From Paramoeba atlantica (taxonomy: Eukaryota; Protista; Discosea), in NCBI GenBank assembly GCA_977017575.1, contig CDRNVI010000152.1:1-64000 (forward strand): a stretch of 64,000 bases of DNA. The letters are read 5' to 3'. Numbering within the stretch: position 1 is the first letter of the stretch; each line of letters begins with the position of its first letter. The notes beneath the pieces were generated by a model. It had not been told where the DNA came from, did not search any database, and saw only the letters and a program-made list of their open reading frames with translations. Made by a program: the position numbers and the translations under genes. This document shows, piece by piece, positions 1 through 23,150 of this stretch.

Positions 1-468
1 AAATTCCTTAAAACTCAGTCCTTTTCAGATTCTTTGAGCCTCTCTTCTTTTGAATCTGTGATGGGGGATCATACTCCTTCAAACCTAGCAGCAGTTGGAG
101 AATTGAGTCAAATGGCTGGAAAAATCCTTCAGATTCTTGGTTGCCATGCCCATAAATGTGATCTTGTTGAAGAAGCTTTTTGAAAGGCTCTAATCAAAAA
201 TCTATCTTCTTGAGTTGAACAGATTGTTGATGATGATAATTTTGATTGTGGTGGTAGATCTGACTTATTGATGAAAGCTCCAACAAGAGTGAAAAATATT
301 CACTCTTCTTCACACTTTCTGTATCAACTTGAAAAACTTGCACTGACTTCATTAAACAAGTATGGGCATTCTAAAAAATTTCAGGTCTGGACAGCACAAC
401 ATAATTTTATCTACCACCACCTCAAACTTCTTCACTCAAATCAGTTTTTAGTTTATTCATACAATAGT
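1..468 (+). pseudogene. DDE transposase remnant, hAT/Mutator-type (D...CxxH segment), interrupted by stops
   Basis: Frame 1 reads ...VMGDHTPSNLAAVGELSQMAGKILQILGCHAHKCDLVEEAF*KAL..., a D-x-N..CxxH pattern typical of hAT/MULE transposases. In-frame TGA at 181-183 and 211-213. The frame continues into the 268..498 ORF. The 5' part lies outside the window. Confidence 0.45.
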
Positions 469-589
469 TTGACTTGTTATCAAGACTTACACTATTAGGA
501 AATGTTTGTGGAAAATTGTTTGCCTTCTTCCACTTGAACATTTGAAATAGAGAATAAACAAGAAATTATTAAAAGTGATTTTTTTAATA

Positions 590-3500
590 TTAATTTTCTT
601 ATAATTTCAATTTCTTAATTATGTTTCCATATTGAATAGAATGTTTTAATTTATTTTTTAATTTTATAATATATTTTAAATTTATTTTTTAATTTTATAA
701 TGTGTTTTCAATTTATTTTTCATTTTAAAAATATTTTTTAAGTTGGTTCAATCAAATTTCTTAATTGTTTTAAATTGATGTATTTGATTTATTTTTTATT
801 TTATTTTTTTCATATTATTTTTTTGTAATTTCAATTTCTTAATTATGTCTCCATATTGAATGCAATTTCCTAATTTATTTTCTGATTCTGTGATATTTTT
901 AGAACTTATATTTCAGATCTATGATATTTTTTAAGTTGGTTCAATCAAATTTCTTAATTGTTTTGAATTGATGTATTTAATTTATTTTTTATTTTCTTTT
1001 TTTCACATTAATTTTTTGTAATTTCAATTTCTTAATTATGTCTCCATATTGAATGCAATTTCCTAATTTATTTTCTGATTCTGTGATATTTTTAGAACTT
1101 ATATTTCAGATCTATGATATTTTTTAAGTTGGTTCAATAAAATTTCTTAATTGTTTTTGGTTGATGTATTTGATTTATTTTTTGTTTCATTTTTTTCATA
1201 TTATTTTTTTGTAATTTCAATTTCTTAATTATGTCTCTATATTGAATGCAATTCCTTAATTTATTTTCTGATTCTCTGATATTTTTAGAACTTATATTTC
1301 AGATCTATGATATTTTTTAAGTTGGTTCAATCAAATTTCTTAATTGTTTTGAATTGATGTATTTAATTTATTTTTTATTTTCTTTTTTTCACATTAATTT
1401 TTTGTAATTTCAATTTCTTAATTATGTCTCCATATTGAATGCAATTTCCTAATTTATTTTCTGATTCTGTGATATTTTTAGAACTTATATTTCAGATCTA
1501 TGATATTTTTTAAGTTGGTTCAATAAAATTTCTTAATTGTTTTTGGTTGATGTATTTGATTTATTTTTTGTTTCATTTTTTTCATATTATTTTTTTGTAA
1601 TTTCAATTTCTTAATTATGTCTCTATATTGAATGCAATTCCTTAATTTATTTTCTGATTCTCTGATATTTTTAGAACTTATATTTCAGATCTATGATATT
1701 TTTTAAGTTGGTTCAATCAAATTTCTTAATTGTTTTGAATTGATGTATTTAATTTATTTTTTATTTTCTTTTTTTCACATTAATTTTTTGTAATTTCAAT
1801 TTCTTAATTATGTCTCCATATTGAATGCAATTTCCTAATTTATTTTCTGATTCTGTGATATTTTTAGAACTTATATTTCAGATCTATGATATTTTTTAAG
1901 TTGGTTCAATAAAATTTCTTAATTGTTTTTGGTTGATGTATTTGATTTATTTTTTGTTTCATTTTTTTCATATTATTTTTTTGTAATTTCAATTTCTTAA
2001 TTATGTCTCTATATTGAATGCAATTCCTTAATTTATTTTCTGATTCTCTGATATTTTTAGAACTTATATTTCAGATCTATGATATTTTTTAAGTTGGTTC
2101 AATCAAATTTCTTAATTGTTTTGAATTGATGTATTTAATTTATTTTTTATTTTCTTTTTTTCACATTAATTTTTTGTAATTTCAATTTCTTAATTATGTC
2201 TCCATATTGAATGCAATTTCCTAATTTATTTTCTGATTCTGTGATATTTTTAGAACTTATATTTCAGATCTATGATATTTTTTAAGTTGGTTCAATAAAA
2301 TTTCTTAATTGTTTTTGGTTGATGTATTTGATTTATTTTTTGTTTCATTTTTTTCATATTATTTTTTTGTAATTTCAATTTCTTAATTATGTCTCTATAT
2401 TGAATGCAATTCCTTAATTTATTTTCTGATTCTCTGATATTTTTAGAACTTATATTTCAGATCTATGATATTTTTTAAGTTGGTTCAATCAAATTTCTTA
2501 ATTGTTTTGAATTGATGTATTTAATTTATTTTTTATTTTCTTTTTTTCACATTAATTTTTTGTAATTTCAATTTCTTAATTATGTCTCCATATTGAATGC
2601 AATTTCCTAATTTATTTTCTGATTCTGTGATATTTTTAGAACTTATATTTCAGATCTATGATATTTTTTAAGTTGGTTCAATAAAATTTCTTAATTGTTT
2701 TTGGTTGATGTATTTGATTTATTTTTTGTTTCATTTTTTTCATATTATTTTTTTGTAATTTCAATTTCTTAATTATGTCTCTATATTGAATGCAATTCCT
2801 TAATTTATTTTCTGATTCTCTGATATTTTTAGAACTTATATTTCAGATCTATGATATTTTTTAAGTTGGTTCAATCAAATTTCTTAATTGTTTTGAATTG
2901 ATGTATTTAATTTATTTTTTATTTTCTTTTTTTCACATTAATTTTTTGTAATTTCAATTTCTTAATTATGTCTCCATATTGAATGCAATTTCCTAATTTA
3001 TTTTCTGATTCTGTGATATTTTTAGAACTTATATTTCAGATCTATGATATTTTTTAAGTTGGTTCAATAAAATTTCTTAATTGTTTTTGGTTGATGTATT
3101 TGATTTATTTTTTGTTTCATTTTTTTCATATTATTTTTTTGTAATTTCAATTTCTTAATTATGTCTCTATATTGAATGCAATTCCTTAATTTATTTTCTG
3201 ATTCTCTGATATTTTTAGAACTTATATTTCAGATCTATGATATTTTTTAAGTTGGTTCAATCAAATTTCTTAATTGTTTTGAATTGATGTATTTAATTTA
3301 TTTTTTATTTTCTTTTTTTCACATTAATTTTTTGTAATTTCAATTTCTTAATTATGTCTCCATATTGAATGCAATTTCCTAATTTATTTTCTGATTCTGT
3401 GATATTTTTAGAACTTATATTTCAGATCTATGATATTTTTTAAGTTGGTTCAATAAAATTTCTTAATTGTTTTTGGTTGATGTATTTGATTTATTTTTTG

Positions 3501-6500
3501 TTTCATTTTTTTCATATTATTTTTTTGTAATTTCAATTTCTTAATTATGTCTCTATATTGAATGCAATTCCTTAATTTATTTTCTGATTCTCTGATATTT
3601 TTAGAACTTATATTTCAGATCTATGATATTTTTTAAGTTGGTTCAATCAAATTTCTTAATTGTTTTGAATTGATGTATTTAATTTATTTTTTATTTTCTT
3701 TTTTTCACATTAATTTTTTGTAATTTCAATTTCTTAATTATGTCTCCATATTGAATGCAATTTCCTAATTTATTTTCTGATTCTGTGATATTTTTAGAAC
3801 TTATATTTCAGATCTATGATATTTTTTAAGTTGGTTCAATAAAATTTCTTAATTGTTTTTGGTTGATGTATTTGATTTATTTTTTGTTTCATTTTTTTCA
3901 TATTATTTTTTTGTAATTTCAATTTCTTAATTATGTCTCTATATTGAATGCAATTCCTTAATTTATTTTCTGATTCTCTGATATTTTTAGAACTTATATT
4001 TCAGATCTATGATATTTTTTAAGTTGGTTCAATCAAATTTCTTAATTGTTTTGAATTGATGTATTTAATTTATTTTTTATTTTCTTTTTTTCACATTAAT
4101 TTTTTGTAATTTCAATTTCTTAATTATGTCTCCATATTGAATGCAATTTCCTAATTTATTTTCTGATTCTGTGATATTTTTAGAACTTATATTTCAGATC
4201 TATGATATTTTTTAAGTTGGTTCAATAAAATTTCTTAATTGTTTTTGGTTGATGTATTTGATTTATTTTTTGTTTCATTTTTTTCATATTATTTTTTTGT
4301 AATTTCAATTTCTTAATTATGTCTCTATATTGAATGCAATTCCTTAATTTATTTTCTGATTCTCTGATATTTTTAGAACTTATATTTCAGATCTATGATA
4401 TTTTTTAAGTTGGTTCAATCAAATTTCTTAATTGTTTTGAATTGATGTATTTAATTTATTTTTTATTTTCTTTTTTTCACATTAATTTTTTGTAATTTCA
4501 ATTTCTTAATTATGTCTCCATATTGAATGCAATTTCCTAATTTATTTTCTGATTCTGTGATATTTTTAGAACTTATATTTCAGATCTATGATATTTTTTA
4601 AGTTGGTTCAATAAAATTTCTTAATTGTTTTTGGTTGATGTATTTGATTTATTTTTTGTTTCATTTTTTTCATATTATTTTTTTGTAATTTCAATTTCTT
4701 AATTATGTCTCTATATTGAATGCAATTCCTTAATTTATTTTCTGATTCTCTGATATTTTTAGAACTTATATTTCAGATCTATGATATTTTTTAAGTTGGT
4801 TCAATCAAATTTCTTAATTGTTTTGAATTGATGTATTTAATTTATTTTTTATTTTCTTTTTTTCACATTAATTTTTTGTAATTTCAATTTCTTAATTATG
4901 TCTCCATATTGAATGCAATTTCCTAATTTATTTTCTGATTCTGTGATATTTTTAGAACTTATATTTCAGATCTATGATATTTTTTAAGTTGGTTCAATAA
5001 AATTTCTTAATTGTTTTTGGTTGATGTATTTGATTTATTTTTTGTTTCATTTTTTTCATATTATTTTTTTGTAATTTCAATTTCTTAATTATGTCTCTAT
5101 ATTGAATGCAATTCCTTAATTTATTTTCTGATTCTCTGATATTTTTAGAACTTATATTTCAGATCTATGATATTTTTTAAGTTGGTTCAATCAAATTTCT
5201 TAATTGTTTTGAATTGATGTATTTAATTTATTTTTTATTTTCTTTTTTTCACATTAATTTTTTGTAATTTCAATTTCTTAATTATGTCTCCATATTGAAT
5301 GCAATTTCCTAATTTATTTTCTGATTCTGTGATATTTTTAGAACTTATATTTCAGATCTATGATATTTTTTAAGTTGGTTCAATAAAATTTCTTAATTGT
5401 TTTTGGTTGATGTATTTGATTTATTTTTTGTTTCATTTTTTTCATATTATTTTTTTGTAATTTCAATTTCTTAATTATGTCTCTATATTGAATGCAATTC
5501 CTTAATTTATTTTCTGATTCTCTGATATTTTTAGAACTTATATTTCAGATCTATGATATTTTTTAAGTTGGTTCAATCAAATTTCTTAATTGTTTTGAAT
5601 TGATGTATTTAATTTATTTTTTATTTTCTTTTTTTCACATTAATTTTTTGTAATTTCAATTTCTTAATTATGTCTCCATATTGAATGCAATTTCCTAATT
5701 TATTTTCTGATTCTGTGATATTTTTAGAACTTATATTTCAGATCTATGATATTTTTTAAGTTGGTTCAATAAAATTTCTTAATTGTTTTTGGTTGATGTA
5801 TTTGATTTATTTTTTGTTTCATTTTTTTCATATTATTTTTTTGTAATTTCAATTTCTTAATTATGTCTCTATATTGAATGCAATTCCTTAATTTATTTTC
5901 TGATTCTCTGATATTTTTAGAACTTATATTTCAGATCTATGATATTTTTTAAGTTGGTTCAATCAAATTTCTTAATTGTTTTGAATTGATGTATTTAATT
6001 TATTTTTTATTTTCTTTTTTTCACATTAATTTTTTGTAATTTCAATTTCTTAATTATGTCTCCATATTGAATGCAATTTCCTAATTTATTTTCTGATTCT
6101 GTGATATTTTTAGAACTTATATTTCAGATCTATGATATTTTTTAAGTTGGTTCAATAAAATTTCTTAATTGTTTTTGGTTGATGTATTTGATTTATTTTT
6201 TGTTTCATTTTTTTCATATTATTTTTTTGTAATTTCAATTTCTTAATTATGTCTCTATATTGAATGCAATTCCTTAATTTATTTTCTGATTCTCTGATAT
6301 TTTTAGAACTTATATTTCAGATCTATGATATTTTTTAAGTTGGTTCAATCAAATTTCTTAATTGTTTTGAATTGATGTATTTAATTTATTTTTTATTTTC
6401 TTTTTTTCACATTAATTTTTTGTAATTTCAATTTCTTAATTATGTCTCCATATTGAATGCAATTTCCTAATTTATTTTCTGATTCTGTGATATTTTTAGA

Positions 6501-9500
6501 ACTTATATTTCAGATCTATGATATTTTTTAAGTTGGTTCAATAAAATTTCTTAATTGTTTTTGGTTGATGTATTTGATTTATTTTTTGTTTCATTTTTTT
6601 CATATTATTTTTTTGTAATTTCAATTTCTTAATTATGTCTCTATATTGAATGCAATTCCTTAATTTATTTTCTGATTCTCTGATATTTTTAGAACTTATA
6701 TTTCAGATCTATGATATTTTTTAAGTTGGTTCAATCAAATTTCTTAATTGTTTTGAATTGATGTATTTAATTTATTTTTTATTTTCTTTTTTTCACATTA
6801 ATTTTTTGTAATTTCAATTTCTTAATTATGTCTCCATATTGAATGCAATTTCCTAATTTATTTTCTGATTCTGTGATATTTTTAGAACTTATATTTCAGA
6901 TCTATGATATTTTTTAAGTTGGTTCAATAAAATTTCTTAATTGTTTTTGGTTGATGTATTTGATTTATTTTTTGTTTCATTTTTTTCATATTATTTTTTT
7001 GTAATTTCAATTTCTTAATTATGTCTCTATATTGAATGCAATTCCTTAATTTATTTTCTGATTCTCTGATATTTTTAGAACTTATATTTCAGATCTATGA
7101 TATTTTTTAAGTTGGTTCAATCAAATTTCTTAATTGTTTTGAATTGATGTATTTAATTTATTTTTTATTTTCTTTTTTTCACATTAATTTTTTGTAATTT
7201 CAATTTCTTAATTATGTCTCCATATTGAATGCAATTTCCTAATTTATTTTCTGATTCTGTGATATTTTTAGAACTTATATTTCAGATCTATGATATTTTT
7301 TAAGTTGGTTCAATAAAATTTCTTAATTGTTTTTGGTTGATGTATTTGATTTATTTTTTGTTTCATTTTTTTCATATTATTTTTTTGTAATTTCAATTTC
7401 TTAATTATGTCTCTATATTGAATGCAATTCCTTAATTTATTTTCTGATTCTCTGATATTTTTAGAACTTATATTTCAGATCTATGATATTTTTTAAGTTG
7501 GTTCAATCAAATTTCTTAATTGTTTTGAATTGATGTATTTAATTTATTTTTTATTTTCTTTTTTTCACATTAATTTTTTGTAATTTCAATTTCTTAATTA
7601 TGTCTCCATATTGAATGCAATTTCCTAATTTATTTTCTGATTCTGTGATATTTTTAGAACTTATATTTCAGATCTATGATATTTTTTAAGTTGGTTCAAT
7701 AAAATTTCTTAATTGTTTTTGGTTGATGTATTTGATTTATTTTTTGTTTCATTTTTTTCATATTATTTTTTTGTAATTTCAATTTCTTAATTATGTCTCT
7801 ATATTGAATGCAATTCCTTAATTTATTTTCTGATTCTCTGATATTTTTAGAACTTATATTTCAGATCTATGATATTTTTTAAGTTGGTTCAATCAAATTT
7901 CTTAATTGTTTTGAATTGATGTATTTAATTTATTTTTTATTTTCTTTTTTTCACATTAATTTTTTGTAATTTCAATTTCTTAATTATGTCTCCATATTGA
8001 ATGCAATTTCCTAATTTATTTTCTGATTCTGTGATATTTTTAGAACTTATATTTCAGATCTATGATATTTTTTAAGTTGGTTCAATAAAATTTCTTAATT
8101 GTTTTTGGTTGATGTATTTGATTTATTTTTTGTTTCATTTTTTTCATATTATTTTTTTGTAATTTCAATTTCTTAATTATGTCTCTATATTGAATGCAAT
8201 TCCTTAATTTATTTTCTGATTCTCTGATATTTTTAGAACTTATATTTCAGATCTATGATATTTTTTAAGTTGGTTCAATCAAATTTCTTAATTGTTTTGA
8301 ATTGATGTATTTAATTTATTTTTTATTTTCTTTTTTTCACATTAATTTTTTGTAATTTCAATTTCTTAATTATGTCTCCATATTGAATGCAATTTCCTAA
8401 TTTATTTTCTGATTCTGTGATATTTTTAGAACTTATATTTCAGATCTATGATATTTTTTAAGTTGGTTCAATAAAATTTCTTAATTGTTTTTGGTTGATG
8501 TATTTGATTTATTTTTTGTTTCATTTTTTTCATATTATTTTTTTGTAATTTCAATTTCTTAATTATGTCTCTATATTGAATGCAATTCCTTAATTTATTT
8601 TCTGATTCTCTGATATTTTTAGAACTTATATTTCAGATCTATGATATTTTTTAAGTTGGTTCAATCAAATTTCTTAATTGTTTTGAATTGATGTATTTAA
8701 TTTATTTTTTATTTTCTTTTTTTCACATTAATTTTTTGTAATTTCAATTTCTTAATTATGTCTCCATATTGAATGCAATTTCCTAATTTATTTTCTGATT
8801 CTGTGATATTTTTAGAACTTATATTTCAGATCTATGATATTTTTTAAGTTGGTTCAATAAAATTTCTTAATTGTTTTTGGTTGATGTATTTGATTTATTT
8901 TTTGTTTCATTTTTTTCATATTATTTTTTTGTAATTTCAATTTCTTAATTATGTCTCTATATTGAATGCAATTCCTTAATTTATTTTCTGATTCTCTGAT
9001 ATTTTTAGAACTTATATTTCAGATCTATGATATTTTTTAAGTTGGTTCAATCAAATTTCTTAATTGTTTTGAATTGATGTATTTAATTTATTTTTTATTT
9101 TCTTTTTTTCACATTAATTTTTTGTAATTTCAATTTCTTAATTATGTCTCCATATTGAATGCAATTTCCTAATTTATTTTCTGATTCTGTGATATTTTTA
9201 GAACTTATATTTCAGATCTATGATATTTTTTAAGTTGGTTCAATAAAATTTCTTAATTGTTTTTGGTTGATGTATTTGATTTATTTTTTGTTTCATTTTT
9301 TTCATATTATTTTTTTGTAATTTCAATTTCTTAATTATGTCTCTATATTGAATGCAATTCCTTAATTTATTTTCTGATTCTCTGATATTTTTAGAACTTA
9401 TATTTCAGATCTATGATATTTTTTAAGTTGGTTCAATCAAATTTCTTAATTGTTTTGAATTGATGTATTTAATTTATTTTTTATTTTCTTTTTTTCACAT

Positions 9501-10266
9501 TAATTTTTTGTAATTTCAATTTCTTAATTATGTCTCCATATTGAATGCAATTTCCTAATTTATTTTCTGATTCTGTGATATTTTTAGAACTTATATTTCA
9601 GATCTATGATATTTTTTAAGTTGGTTCAATAAAATTTCTTAATTGTTTTTGGTTGATGTATTTGATTTATTTTTTGTTTCATTTTTTTCATATTATTTTT
9701 TTGTAATTTCAATTTCTTAATTATGTCTCTATATTGAATGCAATTCCTTAATTTATTTTCTGATTCTCTGATATTTTTAGAACTTATATTTCAGATCTAT
9801 GATATTTTTTAAGTTGGTTCAATCAAATTTCTTAATTGTTTTGAATTGATGTATTTAATTTATTTTTTATTTTCTTTTTTTCACATTAATTTTTTGTAAT
9901 TTCAATTTCTTAATTATGTCTCCATATTGAATGCAATTTCCTAATTTATTTTCTGATTCTGTGATATTTTTAGAACTTATATTTCAGATCTATGATATTT
10001 TTTAAGTTGGTTCAATAAAATTTCTTAATTGTTTTTGGTTGATGTATTTGATTTATTTTTTGTTTCATTTTTTTCATATTATTTTTTTGTAATTTCAATT
10101 TCTTAATTATGTCTCTATATTGAATGCAATTCCTTAATTTATTTTCTGATTCTCTGATATTTTTAGAACTTATATTTCAGATCTATGATATTTTTTAAGT
10201 TGGTTCAATCAAATTTCTTAATTGTTTTGAATTGATGTATTTAATTTATTTTTTATTTTCTTTTTT
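590..10266. repeat. AT-rich tandem satellite: 193-bp monomers alternating as A/B variants, 386-bp higher-order repeat, about 24 units
   Basis: ATTTCAATTTCTTAATTATGTCTC recurs at 828, 1021, 1214, 1407, 1793 (193-bp step), and exact identity recurs every 386 bp. A/B diagnostics include CTCCAT/CTCTAT, CTGTGAT/CTCTGAT, CAATAA/CAATCA and TTGGTTG/GAATTG. Diverged partial monomers occur at about 590-830. Confidence 0.97.
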
Positions 10267-11799
10267 ATCAAAAATTTTTTTCTCTTTTTTGAATATTTAA
10301 AATCTTATTTTTTTCAAAAATATAAAAATCAAATTGAGAAAAATATTTTTATTTTTAGCCAAATAAAGAAAATTAGTTTTGTTTCTGAAATTGATTTTAG
10401 TTTTTTGTTTGTTTTTGTTGGTTTTTGTTTAATTGCTTCATTTCACCTAAATTCCTTTTCAAGAATTTATTATCTTCTTTTTTAAAAAAAAAAAAATCTT
10501 TTATCTTTCTTGTTAAAGTAATTTCATTGTAAAATTTAAAACTTTTAGTTCATGAATACATTCTTTTTTATGAAACCTTTGAATGAGAAAAGTTGACTCT
10601 TTGTTAAACTTTAATTAAGTAATGTTATTGTTTTTATGAAAAATTGATTTTTAATAATTCAAATGAAAAAGAATGAATAAAAACTTTCACAACTATAAGT
10701 TGTTTTTTTCAAATTGACTAACAACAAAACAGAAAACTTTTCAAAACCTAGGGTAATCTGCTTTTTGGAGTGAAATCAAAGATATGAAAACACTTTACAA
10801 AGATTGAACCTTCTCAAATTGATAAAATTGTTAAGTATGTGTAAAAATGTAATGGAAACCAAGTTTCATTGATCCAAACCACCTTCAAAGATTGGATTAA
10901 TACCACTTTCTCAAAAGCAATCTTTTTCACCTGAATTTATTTCTTTGTTTAGAGTGAAAAACAACTTTTTCTTATTGATTCAGAGTCATTTGAGGTAGAG
11001 AGGTGCAGTTTGTTTGAGGAAAAGCTGAAACAAAATACAAAAAAATTGTAAGAAAAAATTGATGCTACTCACTCTCAATTGATCATAAATATTAATGAAA
11101 CTGATTTTAATTGCAAAAAAGATACTGAAAAACTCAAAGTTGTTTTAATATATAATTGCTCCTATATATATTGTTCCTCTTGAAATGAATTCTATATCAC
11201 TTTAATACTTATAGTTGGTATTATTGGATGGAGTCTTTCAATTTTTGCAACTATCAAAACAATATTCTTTGTTTTAGACTTAAAGGTGATGTATAATTTC
11301 TCAGTAAATGAGTAGTATTATATAATATTATTTTCATCATCAAATATCAATAATAAGTTATTTTCTTATTAAATTGATAAAATTTTTGTTCTAAAAGTAA
11401 TTATAAGATGTTGATTTTTAGAGTTCAAAGATAATACCAAAACTCTTCTTATCTTAAATAGTTGTTTTGTTTATAGTGTTGCAAATTTTCAAGCCTTAAC
11501 TTGTAATTTCACAAAGTAATTCATTTAAAGCATAATTTTTTCTAGTATGGGTTTTGAACATTGTCTTGGTAAGAATTATACAATCTTCAACAATCACAAT
11601 CTTTTTTATCATTGATCTAATACTTTGTATCCCTTTTAAGTAGTCTATAAATTCACCAATATTGTTAAAGCTAAGAGAAATGGTTTCAAACCCACCACAT
11701 ATTTCTCTCTCTTTCCTGAAAACTGCAAAATCTGCACCCCCCAGATGAAGGCCTGTATATCTTGAATCATTATAAAACATTTAAAAGCTTTTGAATTTA

Positions 11800-13148
11800 A
11801 AGTTTTTCTTCTTTTTAGGTTCTTTTTTGATTTGAGTTCTTGGAGGCTAAAGAAGGATTTTATTCTTTCTCAGGATTTTTCTAACAATTTTTATAGTAAA
11901 CTAAACTAATTTAGTTTCTTCTGCACACACTATGAGCCACAAACTTAGTAAGGCAGCACTCACCACAGAGGTTTCTTGTCTAGTAAAATACTTTGAGACA
12001 AGACCACATACATTTTTAGTTTCTTGCCAATTGAGTACTTTCAGCAAAATACATTTCCTTCCTCTTGCTTGAAGAAAACCCTCAACCACAAAGCATTTTT
12101 CCAGTAGATGAGATTATAACTCCTTTTCTCAGTGGCAGAGGCAACAACTTGAATCTTGGTTTGAGAAGTGAAACAACTTGTTTCTTGTAGATAGTTCTTT
12201 TATTAGAAATTTAAGTAAATTCTTCTTAAACTGAGGTTTAATTGCATGAACCAAGTTGTACACCACATACTCAGCTCTTCTTTTCCCCACATACAAGTCT
12301 TTGATTTCAATTGAAATCATTTGAGACATATTGGTATATGTAACACAAGTGGCCTGGCCAAACACAACTTTGGAAGAAAGGCTTTGGGCTGCAATGAAAG
12401 CATTCTTCCACATGGCTTCAATGGAGAGAGGATTCTAATAATCACTCTTCATTGGTGGACAAGAGGTGAAAAGAGCCCAATTAAAAACAATAGGGTGATG
12501 TAGTTGAGGATTTGAGTCCAAAGAGGATAGCATAAAGTAAGAACAGAGGTTTTAGTGATGGCATAGGCACCCAGGGCTGAGCAAATGGATTTCCACATCA
12601 AAGAGGTGATAGATTTTAGGATCAACTTGAATCTCACTAAGTATTCCATACATGGAGTTAGATAGATATTGACCATCCTCACTCTTGAGTAAAAATTCCC
12701 ACCTCTCTTTTTAATTGCTGTTCCAACTTTCTTCATCTTTTGGACCACCTTCTCTCAATCTTTGAGAGAAGATAACCATTTATTCAATCTCACTCCCAGT
12801 TTCATTACCACAGTAATTGAGTCTTGCCATCTCAGACCAGGGGCCTACTGGTTTGTAAGACTCAGTTGAGAGGACAAAGCACTTATTAAAGTTCAGTTTA
12901 GCTTCAGTTGCTTCTTTATATTTCTTAAAGGTTGGAGTGAGAGAATTGATGGTTTCAACTCTCTGAAGCACTATCCCCAAATCATCCATAAAGCCTGACA
13001 GATCTTGGAGGTTGTGTTTCTTCTTCAAACTCACAAGGAGGATGTCAAACACAATCACAAACAATAGAAGGGAGATTGGGCATCTTTGTCTAACTCCTGT
13101 CCAGCTTTGGATTGATTCTTTGGTGCCTGCCCTTTTGGATTCACTAAT
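11800..13148 (-). mobile_element. Non-LTR retrotransposon (LINE, L1/Tx1-like) ORF2 3' part, decayed
   Basis: Fragments GTKESIQSWTGVRQRCPISLLLF (GVRQGCPLSPLLF motif), GFMDDL (YxDD) and LNFNKC, then a C-terminal FL..L.TR..L....C.LC zinc-finger-like segment (12129..12413). Stops and frameshifts are present. Confidence 0.85.
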
Positions 13149-14256
13149 CACTTTGGGACAAAAAAATTTCTTGGGAGAGAACATAGCCAGAGGTCAACCT
13201 GCATTTTTTGGCTCTGAAACACGACTGTGGAAGTGATGTGGCAAAGTGGATAGGCAAAAAAGACCCCAAAAAAACGCGGAAAGGCGAAAAGATATGAACC
13301 CAATTGCCAAAAAGGATGATAATTGGGTTCTTTTTCACTCAAAATTTTTGGGTGGGATCAAGATGGCGTGGGAGAGGAGGAGGTGTTCTTTTTCAACTTC
13401 TCGAAATGGAAAACAAACTGATGATCGAAGATACTTGGGAGACTGAAGAATATCTCCATTTGATTCAGAAAGAGCAAAACACTTCAAATAGAAGAAAAAA
13501 AGCGAAAAAAATAGCAGGACCTGGTGGAAACAAACAAGACGAGATGACAATGCTGATGAATGAACAAATGGTTCATTGTGTTCTGGCACAAAGAATCCCA
13601 AAGACCCTCGAAAAATTGGTAAAAAACACTCTCATGAGTTTTTTTTTTTTCTAAAGATTCTTTTTTTCACTCACACACAAAATTCTTTTAGTGGAGGGGA
13701 AAAGGTTGAAAACATTGGTGCTCTCGCCGGGTTTTCATTCAACATTTCCCTGAGGCCCTCTTTTTCTTTTTGGTCGATAATAACGTTACCAAAACCAAAA
13801 CAAATCGAAAAACTGGGAAGAAAGAATTTTGGGGACAACTTGATCTCCCTTCACAAATCCGAAAGAAGTTGGGGGTCATTGCCTACCAGAAAATTTTTCG
13901 GGATGGGTCCACTGCAACAGTGACTGGCCCTGTGAAAATCAAATTTTCACAGGAAAAAAAATTGTTGTCGATTTCTTATGGCTATTTTCTTCAAAACCAA
14001 GATGGAAGGCCAGCAAGGGGGATGGCTGAAAACTGGAAACTCCCAGTAGTTGCCCCAGTTGTTGTTGTGAAAGAGGAGGCTCTCGACAAATAGTGAAAAA
14101 TAAATTATTTTTTTTATCCGAGGCACCGCCTTTTTTTTTTTTTTTTCTCTTGAGAAAAGACCAAAAAACAAAGCAGCTGCTTTGTTTCGTGACCCACTGA
14201 AGAAGAAGAAAAAGGAGGAAAAGACAGGGTTGTGTGTTGTGTTGTGTTGTGTTCAA

Positions 14257-17200
14257 ATGGCTGAGAGAGGAGTCTCTAGAAAGAAACAGTTGGTGTGTAG
14301 TCATTTGGTGCAGTTTTGTGTGAGAAGGAATGAGAAAAGTTCATGTGGAGTTTTCAGTTCAAAACAAGCCAAAAGTATTCATCAACGTTTACGCCATTAT
14401 TGTCCAGATGAATGTAAGAGGTGTCAAAAAGAACAAGGTTTGAATTCTTTTCCTCTTCTTCGATCTTCAGTTTCAGAGAGTAGTTGGGTGGGTGGGTTTA
14501 AAGTTTCTGTTTGTCTTTTTTCTTTTTGGTGGGTTTGAAAGTGTTGCTATTCTGAAAGAATTTGGTGTTTGGAATTAGAAAGAGCTGCTGCTGCTGTTGA
14601 TCAAACTGCTGAGAGTATGATGGGTATGGGAGCAATTCCTCAAGTTTTTCCACAACAAGGACAACAGGAACAGGTCTTTTTTTTTTGCAAAGAGAAGAGT
14701 CTTTTTATTCTTCAAGTCAAGTTAAGTGATGACACTGCAAGAAAAATAATTTTTGTTTTTTAGACTAGAAGAAGAGGTGGTACCACCTCTGCTTTTTCCA
14801 CCACCACCACCACACTCCCCATTGCTGCTTCCAACAGTACCTTTACCACCACCACCACCACCGCCACTTTTACTCCTCCTGTGACTGCTTCTTGCCATCA
14901 CCGTAGTTCCTCAGATGAGAAATTCCTCCGAACCAACTGGGTGAATGAAGCTGTGGGATCACTTGGTTTTGAAAATCCAACCTCTTTCTTGGCTCAGCTT
15001 TTAAGTGATTGCAACACTTCTCAGATTGTTGAAGTCTTAGAGAAACTCTTTCAGTTGGATGATGGAAATGCAAGAAGGGGGAGGAGTGGTTTTTCTCAGA
15101 AACAACAGATTAGAAACTTTTTTGGACTCCCAAATGATGCACAAGAAGTATCAAAAAAATATCGGTGTATGAAAAAACAGGAAAAGGCAGAGTTTTTTGG
15201 AAGATTGTTTCTAAGATTGGGTCTCACTAGGTATCAGATTCGAGGTCTTAATTCTGAACTGGGTTGGGAATTTTCAGATTGTCAGTTCAAGTATTGGTTC
15301 CAAAAACTAAAAGATCAGATTCCCTTGGAAAAAACAGACCATGGTTGGAGAGTGAATGATGTTGAGGGTGAAGTGAATAGAATGTTTGATGATGATTGGG
15401 AGGGCAACAAGTATCCTCTTTGGGATGAATATGATCGGGTGAACAACAATATGAATCACCAAGAAGAAGCAACTATTGGTGGTGTTGCTAATGCAGAGGA
15501 AAATTTAAAGCTGAAGATGATCTTTTCTGCTGATGGGGGTTCTTTTGATCGAAGGAACAAAGGAGTTGTTGTGAAATTGATACGTGGTGATGAAGAGTGG
15601 TGGGCAAAAGGAACTCGAACTTGGAGAGCAGTCCTCAATTTAAGTTTGGGTGTCTTTGTAATGAAAGAGAGCTTTAAAACCTTTCAAGAAGAGATATCTC
15701 CGATTTATCAGATGATTTACCAGGTAAGTATTTTTTTGTAATGCTTTTAATTTAATTTAATATTAATATTAATATTAATTTAATTTAATTTAATTTTTGA
15801 CTTTTTTAATTTTTTTTTTTAAAAAAAATTAATTTAATTTTTCGTTTGATATTCATTTCATTAATTTTCTTCTCTTTTTTACCTACTTTTTCTTTCCCCT
15901 CTCTCCTCTCTCTTTCTTCTCTTGGGACTCTTTTGTGATTTTTATTAGAAAAAGATTCAGTATTCAGATTTCAAGGAATGAACAATTTCATTCACTGAAA
16001 CACATGACATGTTATGCTCTTCACTTCTTTTTGGTCATGGTGGCAAATCAATATTTCATCACACATCAAAAAGGCCTTGTTGGCGTTGTAACATTGTTCG
16101 AGATAAGGATGATAGAGGGCTTTGGGATGATCATACAAAGGTTTGCAGCTTCTTCCAAATTTTATTAAAATAATTTACTCCATAAAAATGAATAAGAAAA
16201 TAAAAGAAGAAAAATTTCAAAAATAATTAAGAAAAAAAAAATAATTTCAACTAAAAAAAATAATTTTGTTTTTACTAACATCCACCCCCCACCCATATTT
16301 TTTTGTCAGCATCACTTTTGGGATAATCAATTTGGTGGTTATAGTATCTTTGAAAGTTTTGCTGAGGCTGATGATGAACTGGCAATTAATCTTGTTGGTA
16401 ACTTGGATCAAAAACATACATGGTGAACTTTAGAACAAAAAAAAAGCGATTTTCAATTGGTTCAGGGCTGGGAGGGATCCAAGAACAGTCTTGCAAAATT
16501 TATGAATCAAATGGGAATGAGAAATCCTCCAATAACTCCATCGCAACCATGGGACCACAACTTGGACTTGATCCACTTTGTTGAAGGGACTTGTAGAAAT
16601 GTTGTTAAACTTTTTGTGATGGATGTTTCTCTGTGTAAGTTAAAAAAAGAATATTTTGAAAATAATACTTTTGAAAAGAATAAAATTCTCATTGAAAAAG
16701 AAAATAGATTCACCTCATGATTTAACGATTTGAATTGCTTTTTATCTCATTGGAGGAGTGAAAATTCCAGATCCATCACAAAAGGTATTCAACCTTTGGG
16801 AGAGAATCAAAAAAGTAAGACCTAGTTACGTTCAATGGATCAAGATTTTAAGGGGTTTTCCCAATAAAACTGGTTGGTTTATTCTTCTCTTCTTTCTTTG
16901 ATATCTTCTTCATTTTTAAAATTTTATAAATAATTATAATAAAAAAAAAATAATATTTTTTGAAATACTTTTTTTTTTTTTTGAATATCTTAATTATTAC
17001 ATTCTCTCTCTTTATTTTTCTACAACTGACAATATATTTTTGTTTTCAAAAAAAATCATTTATTTTAGCCTGAAAAGGAGCTGTTGATTTTCTTTATGAT
17101 GAATATTTTATTAAATTAGCTGAATGGATGGATTCAAATCTCCAAAGTGAAAAAGTCAAAAGCATTTCACATGAACAAGAGGAACCAGAAGTCCTTCCTT

Positions 17201-20200
17201 TTTCGGCGTTTAATGCAGCTTTGTTGAATGCAAAAGGTTGATTTACTATTTCTTGTTTTTTCCAAACAAACAAAAACTCTCTTTTTTTGATCAAATAATT
17301 TTATTCAGAAAAAAAAAATTTCAAAAGTTTTTTCATAATTTTTGTTATTCAGATTTTGATTTATCGATCATCGATGTTTTAATTGGAGATTCAGAACGAG
17401 ACACATTTGAACCAGAATATGAGTTTCTAACGTTGACTTATGACATTCTCCAAATGGCTTCAGCCCCATATCAACTCTCTCATCAGAAGATCAATATTGT
17501 TCGAAAGGCTTCCCTTCTTTGGGGAAGAAAATATAACGAATGTAATTTCTCCCCTCTTTATTGGGCTCCTTATTTACATACCCTCCATGATCACCTTCAT
17601 TGGGAGTTATTGAGGTTTGTTTTTTCTTTATTATTTTTGTGGTGTTGAAATTTTTTAAAAATGATGGTTCATAATATCCATCCTTCTTTTTTGATTTTCA
17701 GTTTTTCTGCAATACAGAATAAAGTCACTCCCCTCTGACATACACAACACAGATACCCTCTTCCACGAAGAGCAGGATTTGCAATTGAAGGAGCCATTCT
17801 TGCAGCTCGTTCTCATTGTTGGGCCCAAAAGCCATTTGGAGGTAGACATAGGCAAGGAGTGAGCAGTCAAGAGAAAGGAACTTTTTCAATCCAAATGAAT
17901 GCCTTGATCAAAGGGATGATGGAGCGAAGTGAGGCATTGAGATCAGAGAAAAAACTTGAAAACAGAGCAAGCAAAATAAGTGCAAATGAACCTTCTCGAC
18001 TTATTCGTGAGGTATTTTTTGTTGACCCTTTTTTCCCCCAAATTTGTTGTTTTCTGAAAATTTCAAATTATTTTTTTTTAAAATAAAATATGAAAACTCA
18101 AAAGCAGATTTCTAATAATTCTTTCCTTCTACCAAAATCAGGGTCACTCCTCAAAACTTGTTCCCTCTGGTTCTTCAAAGCAACCCCCCCTCCTCAAAAG
18201 AACAAAATTACCTAATTCTGTTGCCTGCAAATCAGCTTATCAGTATGCTTCTTTGTGTTGCCAGCCCCTTCAGGATACTTTGGATCCAATAACAAATTAT
18301 CAATCCTCTTCTCATCGTCACAACATCCGCTCTTTCAACCCTTCATCACACTACATGTCTTCCCAAACCACTCCAATTAACCTCTCTTCCCCTTCCCCTT
18401 CCCCTTCCCCTTCCCCTTCCTCTTCCCCTTCCCCTTCCCCTCCCCCTTTCCTTTCTTCTCTTTCTCAATCACCAGGAAAAAATTCTCAATTTTCTTTTTC
18501 CTATTCTTCCTTTCCTCTACCATCCCAAACATCCCAAAGTAATTTCTCTTCTTCCACTCATCTCTCAGGAAGTCCCTGTTCTTCACAGTCTTCTTTTCCT
18601 TCTCTTTCTGGTTCTTGTCCTTCTCCTTCTCTTTCTCCTTCTCCTTCTCACCAACCCTATACATCTTGGCCAACCATGTGTCAATCATCTCAATCATCCC
18701 AACAATCCTGTATGGGAAGATTTTCTCTTTCTCCTCAGCAGCCTTCTCCTTCTCCTTCTCCTCCTCTTTCTTGCCCTTCTGTTTCTCCTTTTTCTTCTTT
18801 TCCTTCTCGCCAATCCTCTCATCAACCACTGCCTTTTCCTTCTCCAACTCCTTCTTCCCAAACCACATCCCCACATCCCCATGTTTCTTTCAGGGAGTTT
18901 CCCTTTTCTTTTTCCCCGTCTTTTGCATTTGCGACTCCCTCTCCCCCCCCATCATCAACCCCCAAAATGGTGGGTAATTTCTCATCTTCATTTACTCATT
19001 TCCCAGTTCATTCTCATCATCCTTCTTTCTCTCCAAGTTCTCGTTTTTCACACTCACCATCTTCTTCATCTCCCTTATTGCCTTTTTCTCCTCAGTCATC
19101 TTCTTCTCTTTCTTTTTCTCTTTGTTCTCCTTTCTCTTCTCCTTCTATTTCTCATTGTTCTTCTTCTTTCTCTTTTTCTCCTTCTCCTTCTCCCCCTCCA
19201 CCCTCTCTTTCTTCTTTCTCTCCTTTTGCTCCTTCCACTCCTTTCTCAGGAAGTTCCAGGAACTCTTCACACTCTTCTTTTCCTTCTCTATCTTCTACTT
19301 CTCGCCCCTTCTCCTCTCCCTGTTCTTCTCCTTATTTCTCTCCTCTTCTCTCTTCTCCCTCTCCTTCATCCTCTCCCTCTTCCTCTCCCCTTCTCTCTCC
19401 CTCCCTCTCCCCCTCTTCCTCTCCCTTTTCCTCTTCCTCTCCTCTTTCCTCTCTCTCAGTGAGAAATGCTCTTAAACTCGTTGAAATAAACGAACACCAA
19501 GCATTTCTTGCTTTGGAGCAAGAATATGCGCACATGATGACAGAAATACTCCCAAAGGTTTTTGTGATTTTTTTTCTTTCTCATTGAGAGGAATGTTTCA
19601 TTTTTTCATTTTTAGATTGATGAAGAAATTGAAGCTGGCCATTGGGACCCAATGGCTCGGGTTCAATGTATTCAAAAGATCAAAAAGCTGTCTTCTGCAA
19701 AATCAAACACCATCTACAATCATCTGATTTCTAATGCTATTCTTGTGCAAAATATGTGGTTCTTAGAGTTCCCAAACTAGGAAAAGATGAAGAAAGCAAA
19801 AAAATGGTTGAAGGAGACCGAAGTACCAATGAAAGACAACCTCAAGAATGTTTTGATTCCTGGTAAATGGGTGGAGGAGGAAGTTTGTTTTTTTTTCTTT
19901 TCTTATTTTTCATTATTTTATCATTGTTTTTATCATCTCATACCCAATATTTAGGTGGTTTCTTGGTACTGTCAGAGTTTGAAATCCCGTTTTGTAGGAG
20001 CTCTCTTGGGATCTTTTCTTTTGGATCCACAAGTAAAAACTGATCAAAAACTCTCAAATCTTAGTCAAGTATTTTTTTTTCAAAAAATTTTTTTCAGAAA
20101 TTAGAAAAAAGATTGGCAGCCAGAACATTTTTTTACCTATCAGTAATTTTCATTTTTCAGGTGATGATTTGGCAAAAAACAGGTTTTTATTGCATTTGTA

Positions 20201-20865
20201 ACCCAGGAAATCACTGGGTTGTGATTGATGGAAAAATCGATGAGGCAAACAGAAAGGTTGAATTAACACTGTATGACAGTCTGAAGCAACAGCAAACAAA
20301 TGACAAACCTCTCCAAGGTTTTTTGTGTTTTTTTTGTTCTTCTTTCCCTTTATTCTTCCAGTTACTGAAACTTTTTTATTTTTTTTTAATATTTTCAACA
20401 AAGATATTCAAGCTCTTTTAGAAAAACATTTTCAGGAAAGGTCTGAAGATAAGTTATCATTTCAAAGAAAAATTGCAAGTAAGGGGCCTGACCAGCAACA
20501 GGTTTTTTTTCTTGACTACCTGAATATAGATGGAGAATCTCTTGATTGTTATGTTTTATTTTTCATCCAAAACTGATTTCTTTCATTTTTTCTTTCAGAA
20601 TGTCACAGAGTGTGGTGTTTTGGCTTTATTTACATTCTATTGTCTTACTCAGTCATATCCTCTGACTTTTACCCTTGCTGATTGTCCTGATATTCGTGAA
20701 CATATTTTCTACAGAGTTTATGAGGAACTTCTTCCAGGTCAAACAGAAAAAAGGAAAAGGATGGATGAAGAGCGATTAAATGAACCAAGAAGTACTGGAG
20801 TTCAAAGATCGAGAAGAAGCCAGCTGGCAACAAAGAGAAGGAAAACAACAAATCCATGGATTTGA
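14257..20865 (+). pseudogene. Multi-exon (about 15 exons, about 1600 aa) gene: N-terminal Cys/His finger, CMC-type DDE transposase, Ser/Pro linker, Ulp1/SENP (C48) protease; 6 premature stops
   Basis: Hand-spliced GT-AG exons (approx. 14257-14490, 14579-14673, 14764-15723, 15949-16140, 16310-16632, 16708-16814, 17069-17228, 17353-17613, 17702-18010, 18142-19557, 19616-19880, 19956-20068, 20161-20317, 20403-20490, 20599-20865). Motifs in order: FSADGG, HDMLC..GHGG..PCWRC, DLIHFVEG, YLHTLHDHL, GFAIEG. TACTAAC branch point near 16273. TGA at 15979, 16424, 16718, 17071, 17736; TAG at 19778. Confidence 0.75.
19830..20740 (+). other. Ulp1/SENP-like cysteine protease domain (spliced, C-terminal part of the transposon gene)
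   Basis: The spliced sequence reads NVLIPGKWVEEEVVSWYCQSL...CNPGNHWVVIDG...LTLYDSL...GPDQQQNVTECGVLAL...DCPDIREHI. This supplies the His (HW), Asp (YDSL), oxyanion Gln and Cys (ECG) of the C48 family in the expected order. Confidence 0.8.
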
Positions 20866-21151
20866 TAATAAAAAATTACATTTCTTAAGAATTGCTCTTC
20901 TTCTTATCCCTTTCAAGTATTTTTTCTTTTCTTCTTTTCTTGGGGGGGGGGGGGGGGGGGGGGGAACCTGTAGACAATAAAATTTTTGGATTGTCTACAA
21001 GTCAGATTTTTTTCTCTTAATAAATTTGGTCCCCCACTCAACCCTCTCAACTTAAACTTCAGTTTTTCAAGACTGTTTTTTTATTTACTAAGTTTTATTT
21101 ATTTTTTACAGCTTTTTTTTTCTCAGACTTTTTTGCTTTTTTTGGGGTTGT

Positions 21152-22015
21152 TCATGACTCCATTGTTTCTCTTACCATTTCACGCTTTGGGATTTTGCAT
21201 GCCCGCAAATAAGAACGATGGATAATGAAAAGACCAACCATTCGATCATCTTCAGAAGGGCTTGATGGATCTTCTTCACCATAATACCCACGAGTTCTGT
21301 GACATAACTGGTCAGTATCCAAAAGGAGAACATCCCCAATTCGAAGACCAAAAGCAATATCCAAACCACCAATCTCCAGTCCACCAACTTGATGTTTCCC
21401 AATATGGATCATAACTAAGACAGAGAGAAAATCATTTTGGTCATAATGCATTTTGGCTGATCCTGCAGGGCACATGAATAAATGGAACATCCCAAACTGT
21501 CCCTCAACATCGATTAATCCGTGTTTTTCCAGACAATTCCAAACATCAGGATGATACTTTTCCACCAATCCGGAAAGCTGCTTCCCAATTGATGTCAGAA
21601 CAGAATCGAGAACTTTTTCGACTTCGACCTCGTAGTGGCCTCCTTTTCCAGCAGGATGAAAGGTATAATGTCCTTGTTGGGTCCATCCACCACAAAACAT
21701 AAAAGCTCTCTCCCCTCTTTTTTTGTCAACTGAAGAGTCCCAATGTGTCTCTTGGCATGACAGCAAAGCTACTTGGAATTGTTTCATTTCTTCCTCAGTG
21801 AAAACCGATTTGAGGTAGTGTCCACGATAGCACTCCGTAACACGAGAATTTTTTTGGCGTTGGACCTCGAGGTACACAGACTCATTAATTATGAGACAGT
21901 GCTTCGAATGTTCCCAGTTTGGTTTTGTGGTTGCTTTCAGAGTTTTGTTCACAACTCTGAGTCCACAGCCTCTCTTTCTTTTTTTCGGCTCAGGATCATC
22001 AGGGTTTGAGGCCAT
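21152..22015 (-). CDS. TET/JBP-family 2-oxoglutarate/Fe(II) dioxygenase-like protein (287 aa, intact, intronless)
   Basis: Open frame from ATG 22015 (MASNPDDPEPKKRKR, NLS-like). It contains MHYDQND (HxD, 21440-21448), GGLEIGGLDIAFGLRIGDVLLLDT, LCHRT (distal His) and DRMVGLFIIH (2OG-binding Arg). This is the TET/JBP double-stranded beta-helix layout, as in compact protist and fungal TETs. Confidence 0.8.
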   Translation of the reverse strand: MASNPDDPEPKKRKRGCGLRVVNKTLKATTKPNWEHSKHCLIINESVYLEVQRQKNSRVTECYRGHYLKSVFTEEEMKQFQVALLSCQETHWDSSVDKKRGERAFMFCGGWTQQGHYTFHPAGKGGHYEVEVEKVLDSVLTSIGKQLSGLVEKYHPDVWNCLEKHGLIDVEGQFGMFHLFMCPAGSAKMHYDQNDFLSVLVMIHIGKHQVGGLEIGGLDIAFGLRIGDVLLLDTDQLCHRTRGYYGEEDPSSPSEDDRMVGLFIIHRSYLRACKIPKREMVRETMES

Positions 22016-22532
22016 TTTACGAGGTTGTTGTTTTGTACAAAAAAGGTTCCCAGTATTAAGCGGGCGCTGGTGAATCTCTTTTACAACTTCCACAACTCAA
22101 AAGAAACTGTTCTGAAAAGAAAAAGGAGGGGGAAAAAGAAAAAAAGAACCATGACGCAGAAAACCGTGTCGTGGAAAAAAAATTTTTCACAAGTTTTTTT
22201 TTGATGCTCTAAAAGGAAGCTTAGCACAGAAGCTTTTTTTTAAAGAGCTTTGAAAGGAACATAATCCATCTCTTCAAGCTAGTGAAAACAAATGCACCCC
22301 ATTCCTGTTTTCTCATTCCCCGAAAACGATGTCACAGAACTGGCAAGAATGGGGGCTAATTAAATCAGGGCTGTGAAAAAAAATAATTGTTTGTCTTTCA
22401 TTTCTTTCATCACCTTGAAAAAACTCCGCATTGCAGAAAGTCATTCTTGACCTTTTCAGACTTTTTGTTTCTGGAAAAGTCAATAGCAGGCAACAGAATA
22501 CTACCCTGCAATGAATTTTAACCCAAAGTGAT

Positions 22533-23150
22533 TTAGCAGCCAGGTTACATATTCACAAAGGACTTTCTCAACAATATAGATTGCTTGAGGGGGGCATTCA
22601 GACTTTTGAGAATATGAAGGAGTGCATCACAATTCACATAATCATATGCCTTGCAAAAGTCTGTTTGGAGGAGAGTCACATCTTTTCCCTCTGCCAAAGC
22701 TTTGTAAAAAGAGTTATATACTGATTCTACTGCTTCATTAATTGATCTCCTGAAAATTCATAATTTCACCTGCTTGTTGAATTAATTTTACTCACATATC
22801 AAAGTACTTCTCTTGTGTTGCCTTATACAAAAAGAAGGGAATACCATCAGGTCCTGTGCTGGTGTTGTTGGTTCTCTGAAGTAGTTTATCAACTTTCTTC
22901 CTATCCACATCATGTTTCTCAACTGGAAGGAAATGAGGTTGGTGGTCAGCAATCAGTTCATCAAGAGAATCTTTGTTATATGGTCTTTCTGTGCTGAGAA
23001 AACCCTCTCAAAAATCCTTAATTGCTTTTTTAACCACATTATCATTATGAGAGATCACCCCATCCATGATTACATGTTGTTTTTAACAAAAAGATGAAGA
23101 CCATCTTTGCTTCAAGTTAACAGCTCTGTCAGGTCTGTTTGAATGAGTGT
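22533..23150 (-). mobile_element. 5' part of the interrupted LINE RT (domains 0-3), decayed
   Basis: The reverse strand reads ...TNNTSTGPDGIPFFLYK... and ...DVTLLQTDFCKAYDYVNCDALLHIL... (DFxKAYD motif). In non-LTR RTs this motif precedes the GVRQG motif found at about 13100. Confidence 0.8.

Follow-up and report, generated by a model that had tools for sequence, protein, structure and literature searches.

The locus examined here raises the question of whether a DNA transposon of a protist carries, between its own termini, an enzyme able to counter silencing of the element by DNA methylation. TET-carrying DNA transposons of fungi were reportedly described by Iyer et al. in 2014. The window (the whole stretch analyzed, 64,000 nucleotides, positions 1 to 64,000 of Paramoeba atlantica contig CDRNVI010000152.1) contains a 9.4-kb unit that a sequence-only reading, made from the letters and their open reading frames (ORFs), had taken for a CACT-ended transposon encoding a TET/JBP-like dioxygenase and a transposase fused to a Ulp1 protease. 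The best overall explanation, to which we assign a probability of about 0.72, is a TET-bearing transposon bounded by terminal inverted repeats (TIRs), with a CACTA-like transposase, a Ulp1-like gene, and a TET enzyme serving against silencing. The unit and its ends are as follows.

13149..22530, plus strand (transposase/Ulp1 side): whole element, 9382 bp; colinear with loci L003 and L006, flanks unrelated
13149..13157, plus strand: left TIR, CACTTTGGG; the terminus of subfamily L007 has the same 9 nucleotides
22522..22530, plus strand: right TIR, CCCAAAGTG; the window, L001, L003, L004, L005, and L009 begin at CACTTTRGG there

Copies were located by searching with the 287-amino acid (aa) ORF of the minus strand, which led to a group of almost identical proteins in ENA assembly ERZ24900291, and the contigs were then compared. 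With a slash marking the border of the element, the left junction read ...ctaat/CACTTTGGGAC... at 13149 and the right junction ...ttaaCCCAAAGTG/atttag... at 22530. L003 (10080-19473) was a full colinear copy with 97.2% identity to window positions 13149-22530, and L006 (1-9571) spanned element positions 59-9382 with 98.7% identity. The third full copy was made up of L009 and L011 and carried a nested 2-kb insertion (L009:14763-16765, element position ~5596), whereas L001, L004, L005, L008, and L010 were partial copies. Identity to the window element ranged from 93.5 to 98.7% for L003, L006, L001, L004, L005, and L009/L011. At eight loci, similarity began or ended exactly at CACTTTRGG or CYCAAAGTG, each time in different, unrelated flanks, and the L007 subfamily, 70-76% identical, opened with the same nine terminal bases. 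In total, ERZ24900291 held at least nine further copies or fragments at unrelated sites, differing by 0.4-4.4% from their consensus. Because independent copies stop at the same ends in unrelated flanks, the unit is a mobile element with conserved termini. Thus, both the bounded 9.4-kb unit of the sequence-only reading and its expectation of further copies with the same ends were borne out: positions 13149-22530 are one copy of a multi-copy, TIR-bounded DNA transposon family, and this family has been recently active.

The gene that gives the element its interest lies close to the right end.

21155..22015, minus strand: intronless ORF of 287 aa, TET/JBP-family dioxygenase; identified by catalytic residues, AlphaFold2 model, Foldseek, and relatives

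It is convergent with the plus-strand exons described below; in the window and in L003, L006, L001, L005, L009, L010, L004, and L008, 515 bp separate it from the right terminus. The gene is therefore found inside a complete transposon and in multiple copies, as is characteristic of TET+ transposons; because it lies between the ends of multiple copies, it moves with the transposon and travels as part of the element. An exhaustive representative search yielded 91 relatives of the TET protein, all of them unnamed metagenome proteins. In an alignment of 52 relatives, His190 and Asp192 were invariant, and His239 and Arg258 were conserved in at least 90%; all four are present in the window ORF, which thus possesses the HxD...H iron triad and the conserved arginine for 2-oxoglutarate. 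The Pfam profile Tet_JBP matched six of the 52 relatives (best E 5e-12), and the close relatives P0016, P0019, and P0021 matched it at E 7e-4 to 3.5e-3, below the cut-off. The best match of the family profile in the Protein Data Bank (PDB) was NgTet1, the Tet-like dioxygenase of Naegleria (E 0.011), over the HxD...H segment. An AlphaFold2 model built with the alignment reached a predicted local distance difference test score (pLDDT) of 90.5 and a predicted template modeling score (pTM) of 0.88. When the model was submitted to Foldseek, ranks 1-26 were all TET2, CcTet, NgTET1, or CMD1 (E 2e-9 to 7e-7), followed by homologs of AlkB. The predicted double-stranded beta-helix fold is closest to solved TET/JBP members and not to other 2-oxoglutarate oxygenases. 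No match was obtained with the 287-aa ORF in a phmmer search of PDB or with the TET alignment in scans of the JGI metagenomes and IMG/VR. Fold, HxD...H...R residues, and family matches all agree with the TET/JBP-like gene proposed earlier, although the window ORF itself stays short of the Pfam cut-off. On the grounds of modeled fold and catalytic residues, we accept the ORF as a member of the TET/JBP family with putative dioxygenase activity.

The element interrupts a long interspersed nuclear element (LINE), the two parts of which flank it.

12783..13148, minus strand: left flank, holding the downstream portion of the split LINE reverse transcriptase; RVT_1 of Pfam matched at E 1.5e-8
22531..23100, minus strand: right flank, holding the upstream portion of that LINE reverse transcriptase; joined flanks align with LINE copies

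The RVT_1 match of the left flank and the alignment of the joined flanks with LINE copies confirmed that a LINE reverse transcriptase is split. The sequence-only reading had also pointed to AT on both flanks. These dinucleotides are present on each side, but they are not a target-site duplication (TSD). L005 positions 1424-1824 represent an uninterrupted LINE paralog with 85% identity to the joined flanks. When the flanks were joined with nothing removed, they aligned with this paralog gaplessly at the junction (CCAATATTCAGC versus CTAAT/ATTTAGC). Moreover, the joined flanks kept one reading frame across the junction and were colinear with five LINE ORF2 copies; the sole gap was a one-codon indel six residues from the junction, which also occurs in L005. 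Because a duplication would shift the frame at the junction, a 2-bp TSD is excluded at this site, and AT/AT was rejected as such on the gapless empty-site paralog and the frame continuity against the five ORF2 copies. The flanks of the other full copies, TC/CC for L003 and TT/AA for L009/L011, showed no duplication either, so that the TSD was 0 bp in three of three full copies (AT/AT in the window). In the compared loci, a search for paralogous empty sites matching the insertions of L003 and L009 found none. As the empty-site paralog, frame continuity, and the flanks of the other full copies agree, the family integrates without a TSD, and the window element entered the LINE reverse transcriptase gene without duplicating its target. 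The flank of L006 at 9572-9601 resembles the 3' part of a tRNA (GGTTCAAATCC); the insertion site of this copy is a tRNA gene or a tRNA-derived short interspersed element.

A tblastx comparison with the divergent subfamily L007 revealed plus-strand blocks with one frame conserved well above the other two. The exons attributed to the transposase are the following.

13406..14535, plus strand: likely 5' transposase exons, Cys-rich (HYCPDECKRC); tblastx against L007, one frame 50-62%, others ~40%; no Pfam match
15115..15726, plus strand: transposase exon in which MIFSADGGSF holds the candidate first catalytic Asp; 60% identical to L007 across 204 aa
15982..16155, plus strand: transposase exon where ETHDM is the site of the candidate second Asp and CWRC the C(2)C motif, assigned by eye only; conserved with L007
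16301..16630, plus strand: transposase exon (HH..., DLIHFVEG...N); 61% aa identity with L007
16686..16820, plus strand: transposase exon, further conserved block; tblastx against L007
17358..17600, plus strand: exon with HTLHDHLHWE, candidate H(4)H and catalytic Glu, assigned by eye; open in window and L006; no Pfam match

The exon at 15115..15726 was intact in the window and L006 and had no match in Pfam or PDB. The motifs FSADGG, ETHDM, CWRC, and HTLHDHLHWE, read by eye, occur in that order in conserved exons, and this order fits the CMCT signature D, D, C(2)C, H(4)H, E (PMC12730594). The ends of the element likewise have the form expected for CMC/CMCT elements (5'-CA..TG-3'; CAC..GTG for EnSpm), CACTTTGGG...CCCAAAGTG being found in all copies and in L007. 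Profile and structure-database searches were made exon by exon, with Pfam also on pieces running from stop to stop, and apart from one sub-threshold match in the Ulp1 part Pfam gave no result; such exon-wise searches are insensitive, and their blanks carry little weight. A phmmer search of PDB with two transposase exons found neither RAG1 nor Transib, its sole match being a spurious one to FosB. A word-based protein search with the 325-aa exon ORF, covering proteins of 179-569 aa, returned only the ORFs of the family itself (longer intronless relatives lie outside this range), and scans of the JGI metagenomes and IMG/VR with the transposase exon gave no match. No exon had a Pfam match to the KDZ transposase domain, and the TSD of 0 bp differs from the 7-8 bp of KDZ elements. 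Hence the CMC/CACTA motifs of the sequence-only reading are visible by eye in exons conserved with L007, but profile searches were blank and the 2-bp TSD that accompanied this assignment was refuted. From termini and motif order we infer that the multi-exon gene encodes a putative DDE transposase of the CACTA/CMC(T) kind.

Further downstream on the same strand, exons of a Ulp1-like protease follow a low-complexity stretch.

18094..19584, plus strand: CT-rich stretch, Ser/Pro-rich and of low complexity, either a long linker exon or a non-coding spacer; three plus-strand frames open over most of it
19616..19888, plus strand: candidate N-terminal Ulp1 exon (..LIPGKWVEEE), by eye; no Pfam or PDB match
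20161..20330, plus strand: candidate Ulp1 exon with His and Asp (NHWVVIDG...LYDSL), motif by eye; no PDB or Pfam match
20593..20865, plus strand: Ulp1 exon with Gln and catalytic Cys (QNVTECGV), C-terminal end of the plus-strand gene; SENP and Peptidase_C48 matches

Six of the seven PDB matches of the Cys exon were SENP5 (E 0.03) or SENP1 (E 0.2), aligned at the catalytic cysteine. Its only Pfam match was Peptidase_C48, at E 0.25 and 11.6 bits against a cut-off of 20.7, over positions 167-213 of the 217 in the profile. By eye, the motifs PGxW, HW...YDS, and Q...CG follow one another in this order across the Ulp1 exons. The Ulp1 assignment proposed earlier thus has tentative backing from the Cys exon, through sub-threshold matches to SENP5/SENP1 and Peptidase_C48, but none from the His/Asp and N-terminal exons, which matched nothing. 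A Ulp1/SENP-type cysteine protease is probably encoded downstream of the transposase, as judged from this one exon. The fusion of transposase and protease in one protein, as further proposed, is no more than putative in view of the ~1.5 kb of CT-rich DNA open in all frames between the exons and the stops that L006 has there. The openness of this stretch is itself uninformative because all three frames are open. A fusion is nevertheless plausible by analogy, since Tnp2-ULP1 proteins exist in plants (PMC2528002). The extra bases of L006 in the CT-rich stretch (L006:3367-3540) are apparently a local duplication.

At 0.65% of sites the window copy departs from the majority consensus, and it carries four nonsense mutations. 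Three affect plus-strand exons: TGA at 16424-16426, where L006 and L010 have TGG (Trp); TGA at 16731-16733, where L006 has CGA (Arg); and TAG at 19778-19780 in the candidate N-terminal Ulp1 exon. The fourth, CGA to TGA at 21152-21154, removes the last 19 residues of the TET protein. All four are C-to-T or G-to-A changes. In addition, the window TET carries G240R beside the iron ligand His239. L006 is intact at all four nonsense sites and at Gly240, and the L006-type TET has a 332/306-aa form. Because of the four nonsense mutations the window copy is dead and unable to act on its own.

The same type of change dominated the whole family, with more than 90% of substitutions across copies being C to T or G to A. 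CpG cytosines were mutated in at least one copy in 67% of cases, compared with 12-17% in other contexts. This five-fold excess at CpG across copies validated the CpG decay of transposable elements that the sequence-only reading had noted. About one-third of copy substitutions were at CpG; non-CpG cytosines still mutated far above A/T, with no strong neighbor preference, and this non-CpG excess suggests a general deamination bias or non-CpG methylation. In the window, the observed/expected (o/e) ratio of CpG was 0.00-0.26 over the first 24 kb (element included) and mostly low in other stretches rich in transposable elements, but 0.86-0.88 over the ribosomal DNA (rDNA). The low CpG content of repeats as compared with rDNA fits CpG methylation of repeats. 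Positions 1-12000, with ~20% G+C and a CpG o/e of 0.00, stand in sharp contrast to the rest of the window. The rDNA is a complete unit on the minus strand at 48286-55120, consisting of large subunit, 5.8S, and a long 2.1-kb small subunit gene (53017-55120), and a 5S gene lies at 63326-63444. A repeat of ~219 bp (81-88% identity) at window positions 45219-45437 recurs in L004, L008, L009, L010, L003, and L007.

These observations would be accommodated by the following mechanism. Intact copies may express the TET protein, which would oxidize 5-methylcytosine (5mC) on element DNA and so relieve methylation-based silencing, while the Ulp1-like protease may act on repression that depends on the small ubiquitin-like modifier (SUMO). 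The five-fold excess of CpG decay would mark the elements as present or past targets of methylation. A joint anti-silencing function of TET and protease is accordingly put forward here only as the role they would have in intact copies.

TET homologs were also encountered beside other putative transposase genes. The nearest TET outside the family, P0003 (46% identity), is encoded in L002:1144-3897 (JGI metagenome contig 3300060879), 150 bp downstream of a piggyBac-type transposase gene on the same strand (DDE_Tnp_1_7, E 5e-32). PiggyBac TIRs were sought in L002, but this contig is too short to reach the ends of an element. In L012:1283-6302 (JGI contig 3300060905), the TET homolog P0105 (35% identity) and P0112, an 802-aa ORF lacking introns, are convergently oriented. 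The motifs LSGDG, VSDLK, CPFC, and HLLMCH of P0112 have a similar D..D..CxxC..H(4)H order, and the protein, which had no Pfam match and three close relatives only, possibly represents another uncharacterized transposase family. As a bridge for classifying the transposase of the element it was rejected, there being no significant blastp or hhalign similarity to the element exons and a pLDDT of 41 for its AlphaFold2 model. A second TET-like paralog with 35% identity to the element TET, also without a Pfam match, is located in L010:2550-3302 (minus strand), ~3 kb outside the element copy.

Several observations weigh against the explanation preferred here. The Pfam profile Tet_JBP (PF12851) did not match the window ORF at E ≤ 1, and no Pfam, PDB-sequence, or hhalign match puts any transposase exon in any family. 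CMCT elements make TSDs of 2-5 bp (PMC12730594), and the 0 bp found here departs from this CMC/CMCT range as well as from the 3 bp of EnSpm. Of four putative Ulp1 exons, a single one has any match in Pfam or by PDB phmmer, and this is sub-threshold; in the least decayed copy, L006, the stretch that would link transposase and Ulp1 contains stops within 222 additional bases. Finally, the inferred ancestral element already had a CpG o/e of 0.42, so that any protection by the TET was incomplete. It is most improbable that the unit arose from a chance pairing of 9-mers around unrelated genes or is a nest of separate elements: a TIR of only 9 bp, absent from the list of the 25 longest inverted repeats computed for the region, might invite this idea, but a 9-nucleotide complement at fixed positions has a probability of ~1.6e-6, and the full-length colinear copies (97-99% identity) that end exactly at the 9-mers in unrelated flanks refute it. 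Rather unlikely, though to be taken more seriously, is a real element whose transposase is not CMC/CACTA and that belongs to a separate or new TIR lineage integrating without staggered cuts, functionally like Spy. On that view, convergence or over-reading would account for the CAC...GTG ends and the Cys/His motifs. The 0-bp TSD of all three full copies, together with the empty-site paralog, points in this direction, as do the exons, none of which was matched to Transposase_21, Plavaka, KDZ, or RAG1, and the largest exon, which had no relatives outside the family in the word-based search of 179-569-aa proteins or in the JGI and viral scans. A transposase of the CACTA kind is still preferred, because the 5'-CAC...GTG-3' termini and the succession D, D, C(2)C, H(4)H, E agree with the CMCT signature (PMC12730594), plant CACTA elements are known in which a Ulp1 domain lies downstream of Tnp2 (PMC2528002), and the blanks of insensitive exon-wise searches weigh little.

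The two remaining alternatives concern the cargo. That one strand carries transposase and Ulp1-like protease as two distinct genes is a serious possibility, if at somewhat less than even odds. They are separated by ~1.5 kb of CT-rich low-complexity DNA, and the 222-bp extra stretch with stops occurs in the best-preserved copy; yet one frame of the 18094-19584 ORF runs ~200 nucleotides further 5' and 120 nucleotides further 3' into non-repetitive, protein-like sequence, and Tnp2-ULP1 fusions are known in rice and grapevine (PMC2528002). The TET, for its part, might be cargo with a role other than erasing: it could write a modified base that marks element DNA or regulates excision, candidates being 5-hydroxymethylcytosine, a glyceryl adduct (as for CMD1), and 5-hydroxymethyluracil (as for JBP), or it could be a neutral passenger. 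We regard this as unlikely, given that the catalytic residues are conserved across 52 relatives and that TET homologs adjoin other putative transposase genes, namely the piggyBac gene in L002 and the D..D..CxxC..H(4)H ORF in L012; recurring capture points to an advantage for the element, as has been argued for fungi (PMC12730594). The TET-bearing, CACTA-like element with an anti-silencing TET remains our preferred explanation. A bolder version of it, in which the element is an undescribed, TSD-free CACTA-like lineage of a non-fungal eukaryote with a TET plus Ulp1 deSUMOylase counter-silencing module and in which TET capture is recurrent and eukaryote-wide, is offered as a tentative and rather doubtful proposal.

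Among mobile elements, TET-bearing transposons stand out as the clearest candidates for enzymatic erasure of a silencing mark of host DNA methylation, and the arms-race model would be widened by a recently active, well-delimited family from outside the fungi. If the bolder proposal were true, TET capture by transposons would be a recurrent, eukaryote-wide counter-defense rather than a peculiarity of fungi. This family combines near-intact copies (L006 among them), a SUMO-protease-like gene, and CpG-decay evidence of methylation pressure, and it would offer a compact TET enzyme (~300 aa) and a natural system for testing the anti-silencing hypothesis. TSD-free integration by an element with CAC...GTG ends is unusual and bears on target cutting by CMC/Transib/RAG-like transposases.

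Complete TET+ DNA transposons of 11 lineages are known, all in fungi (Kojima 2025, PMC12730594). The earlier remark that this combination is not known to have been described in an amoebozoan agrees with the literature, in which the TET-bearing transposons found were all fungal (PMC12730594); no JBP/TET transposon of Amoebozoa was apparent from the titles or abstracts of the literature searched, and PMC12730594 mentions neither Ulp1 nor amoebae or protists. Thus, TET-bearing transposons as such are already known, and what is new here is the non-fungal protist host, the missing TSD, and the probable Ulp1 co-cargo. Like the fungal TET+ transposons, especially TET+ EnSpm, ESTA, and PlavakaB of the CMCT clade, the Paramoeba element has its TET/JBP gene between the termini, where it is copied with the element, and it shares with them 5'-CA..TG-3' termini and the proposed role of the enzyme, escape from 5mC-based silencing. 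It differs from them in its protist host, in having no TSD where fungal CMCT families have 2-3 bp or TA, in also carrying a Ulp1-like protease, and in its TET, of a subfamily hitherto represented by unnamed metagenome proteins only. The element TET shares only 12-17% sequence identity with NgTet1 of Naegleria (PDB 4LT5/5CG9), human TET2, and CcTet of Coprinopsis, and Pfam Tet_JBP misses the ORF. Spy elements of the PIF/Harbinger-ISL2EU-Spy group (PMC12730594) are likewise TIR transposons that integrate without a TSD, but their termini and motifs differ, and no sign of a PIF/Harbinger-type transposase was seen here. The other half of the comparison is provided by plants, where Tnp2-ULP1 proteins occur in CACTA elements (Benjak et al. 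2008, PMC2528002). These CACTA-ULP elements, and the KI-MULEs with ULP1 cited in PMC2528002, likewise have, on the strand of the transposase and downstream of it, a C48/Ulp1-like domain. The plant CACTA-ULP elements also share the CAC...GTG termini, whereas they make 3-bp TSDs and carry no TET; the Paramoeba element, with its weak Ulp1 call and putative fusion, carries a TET and makes no TSD.

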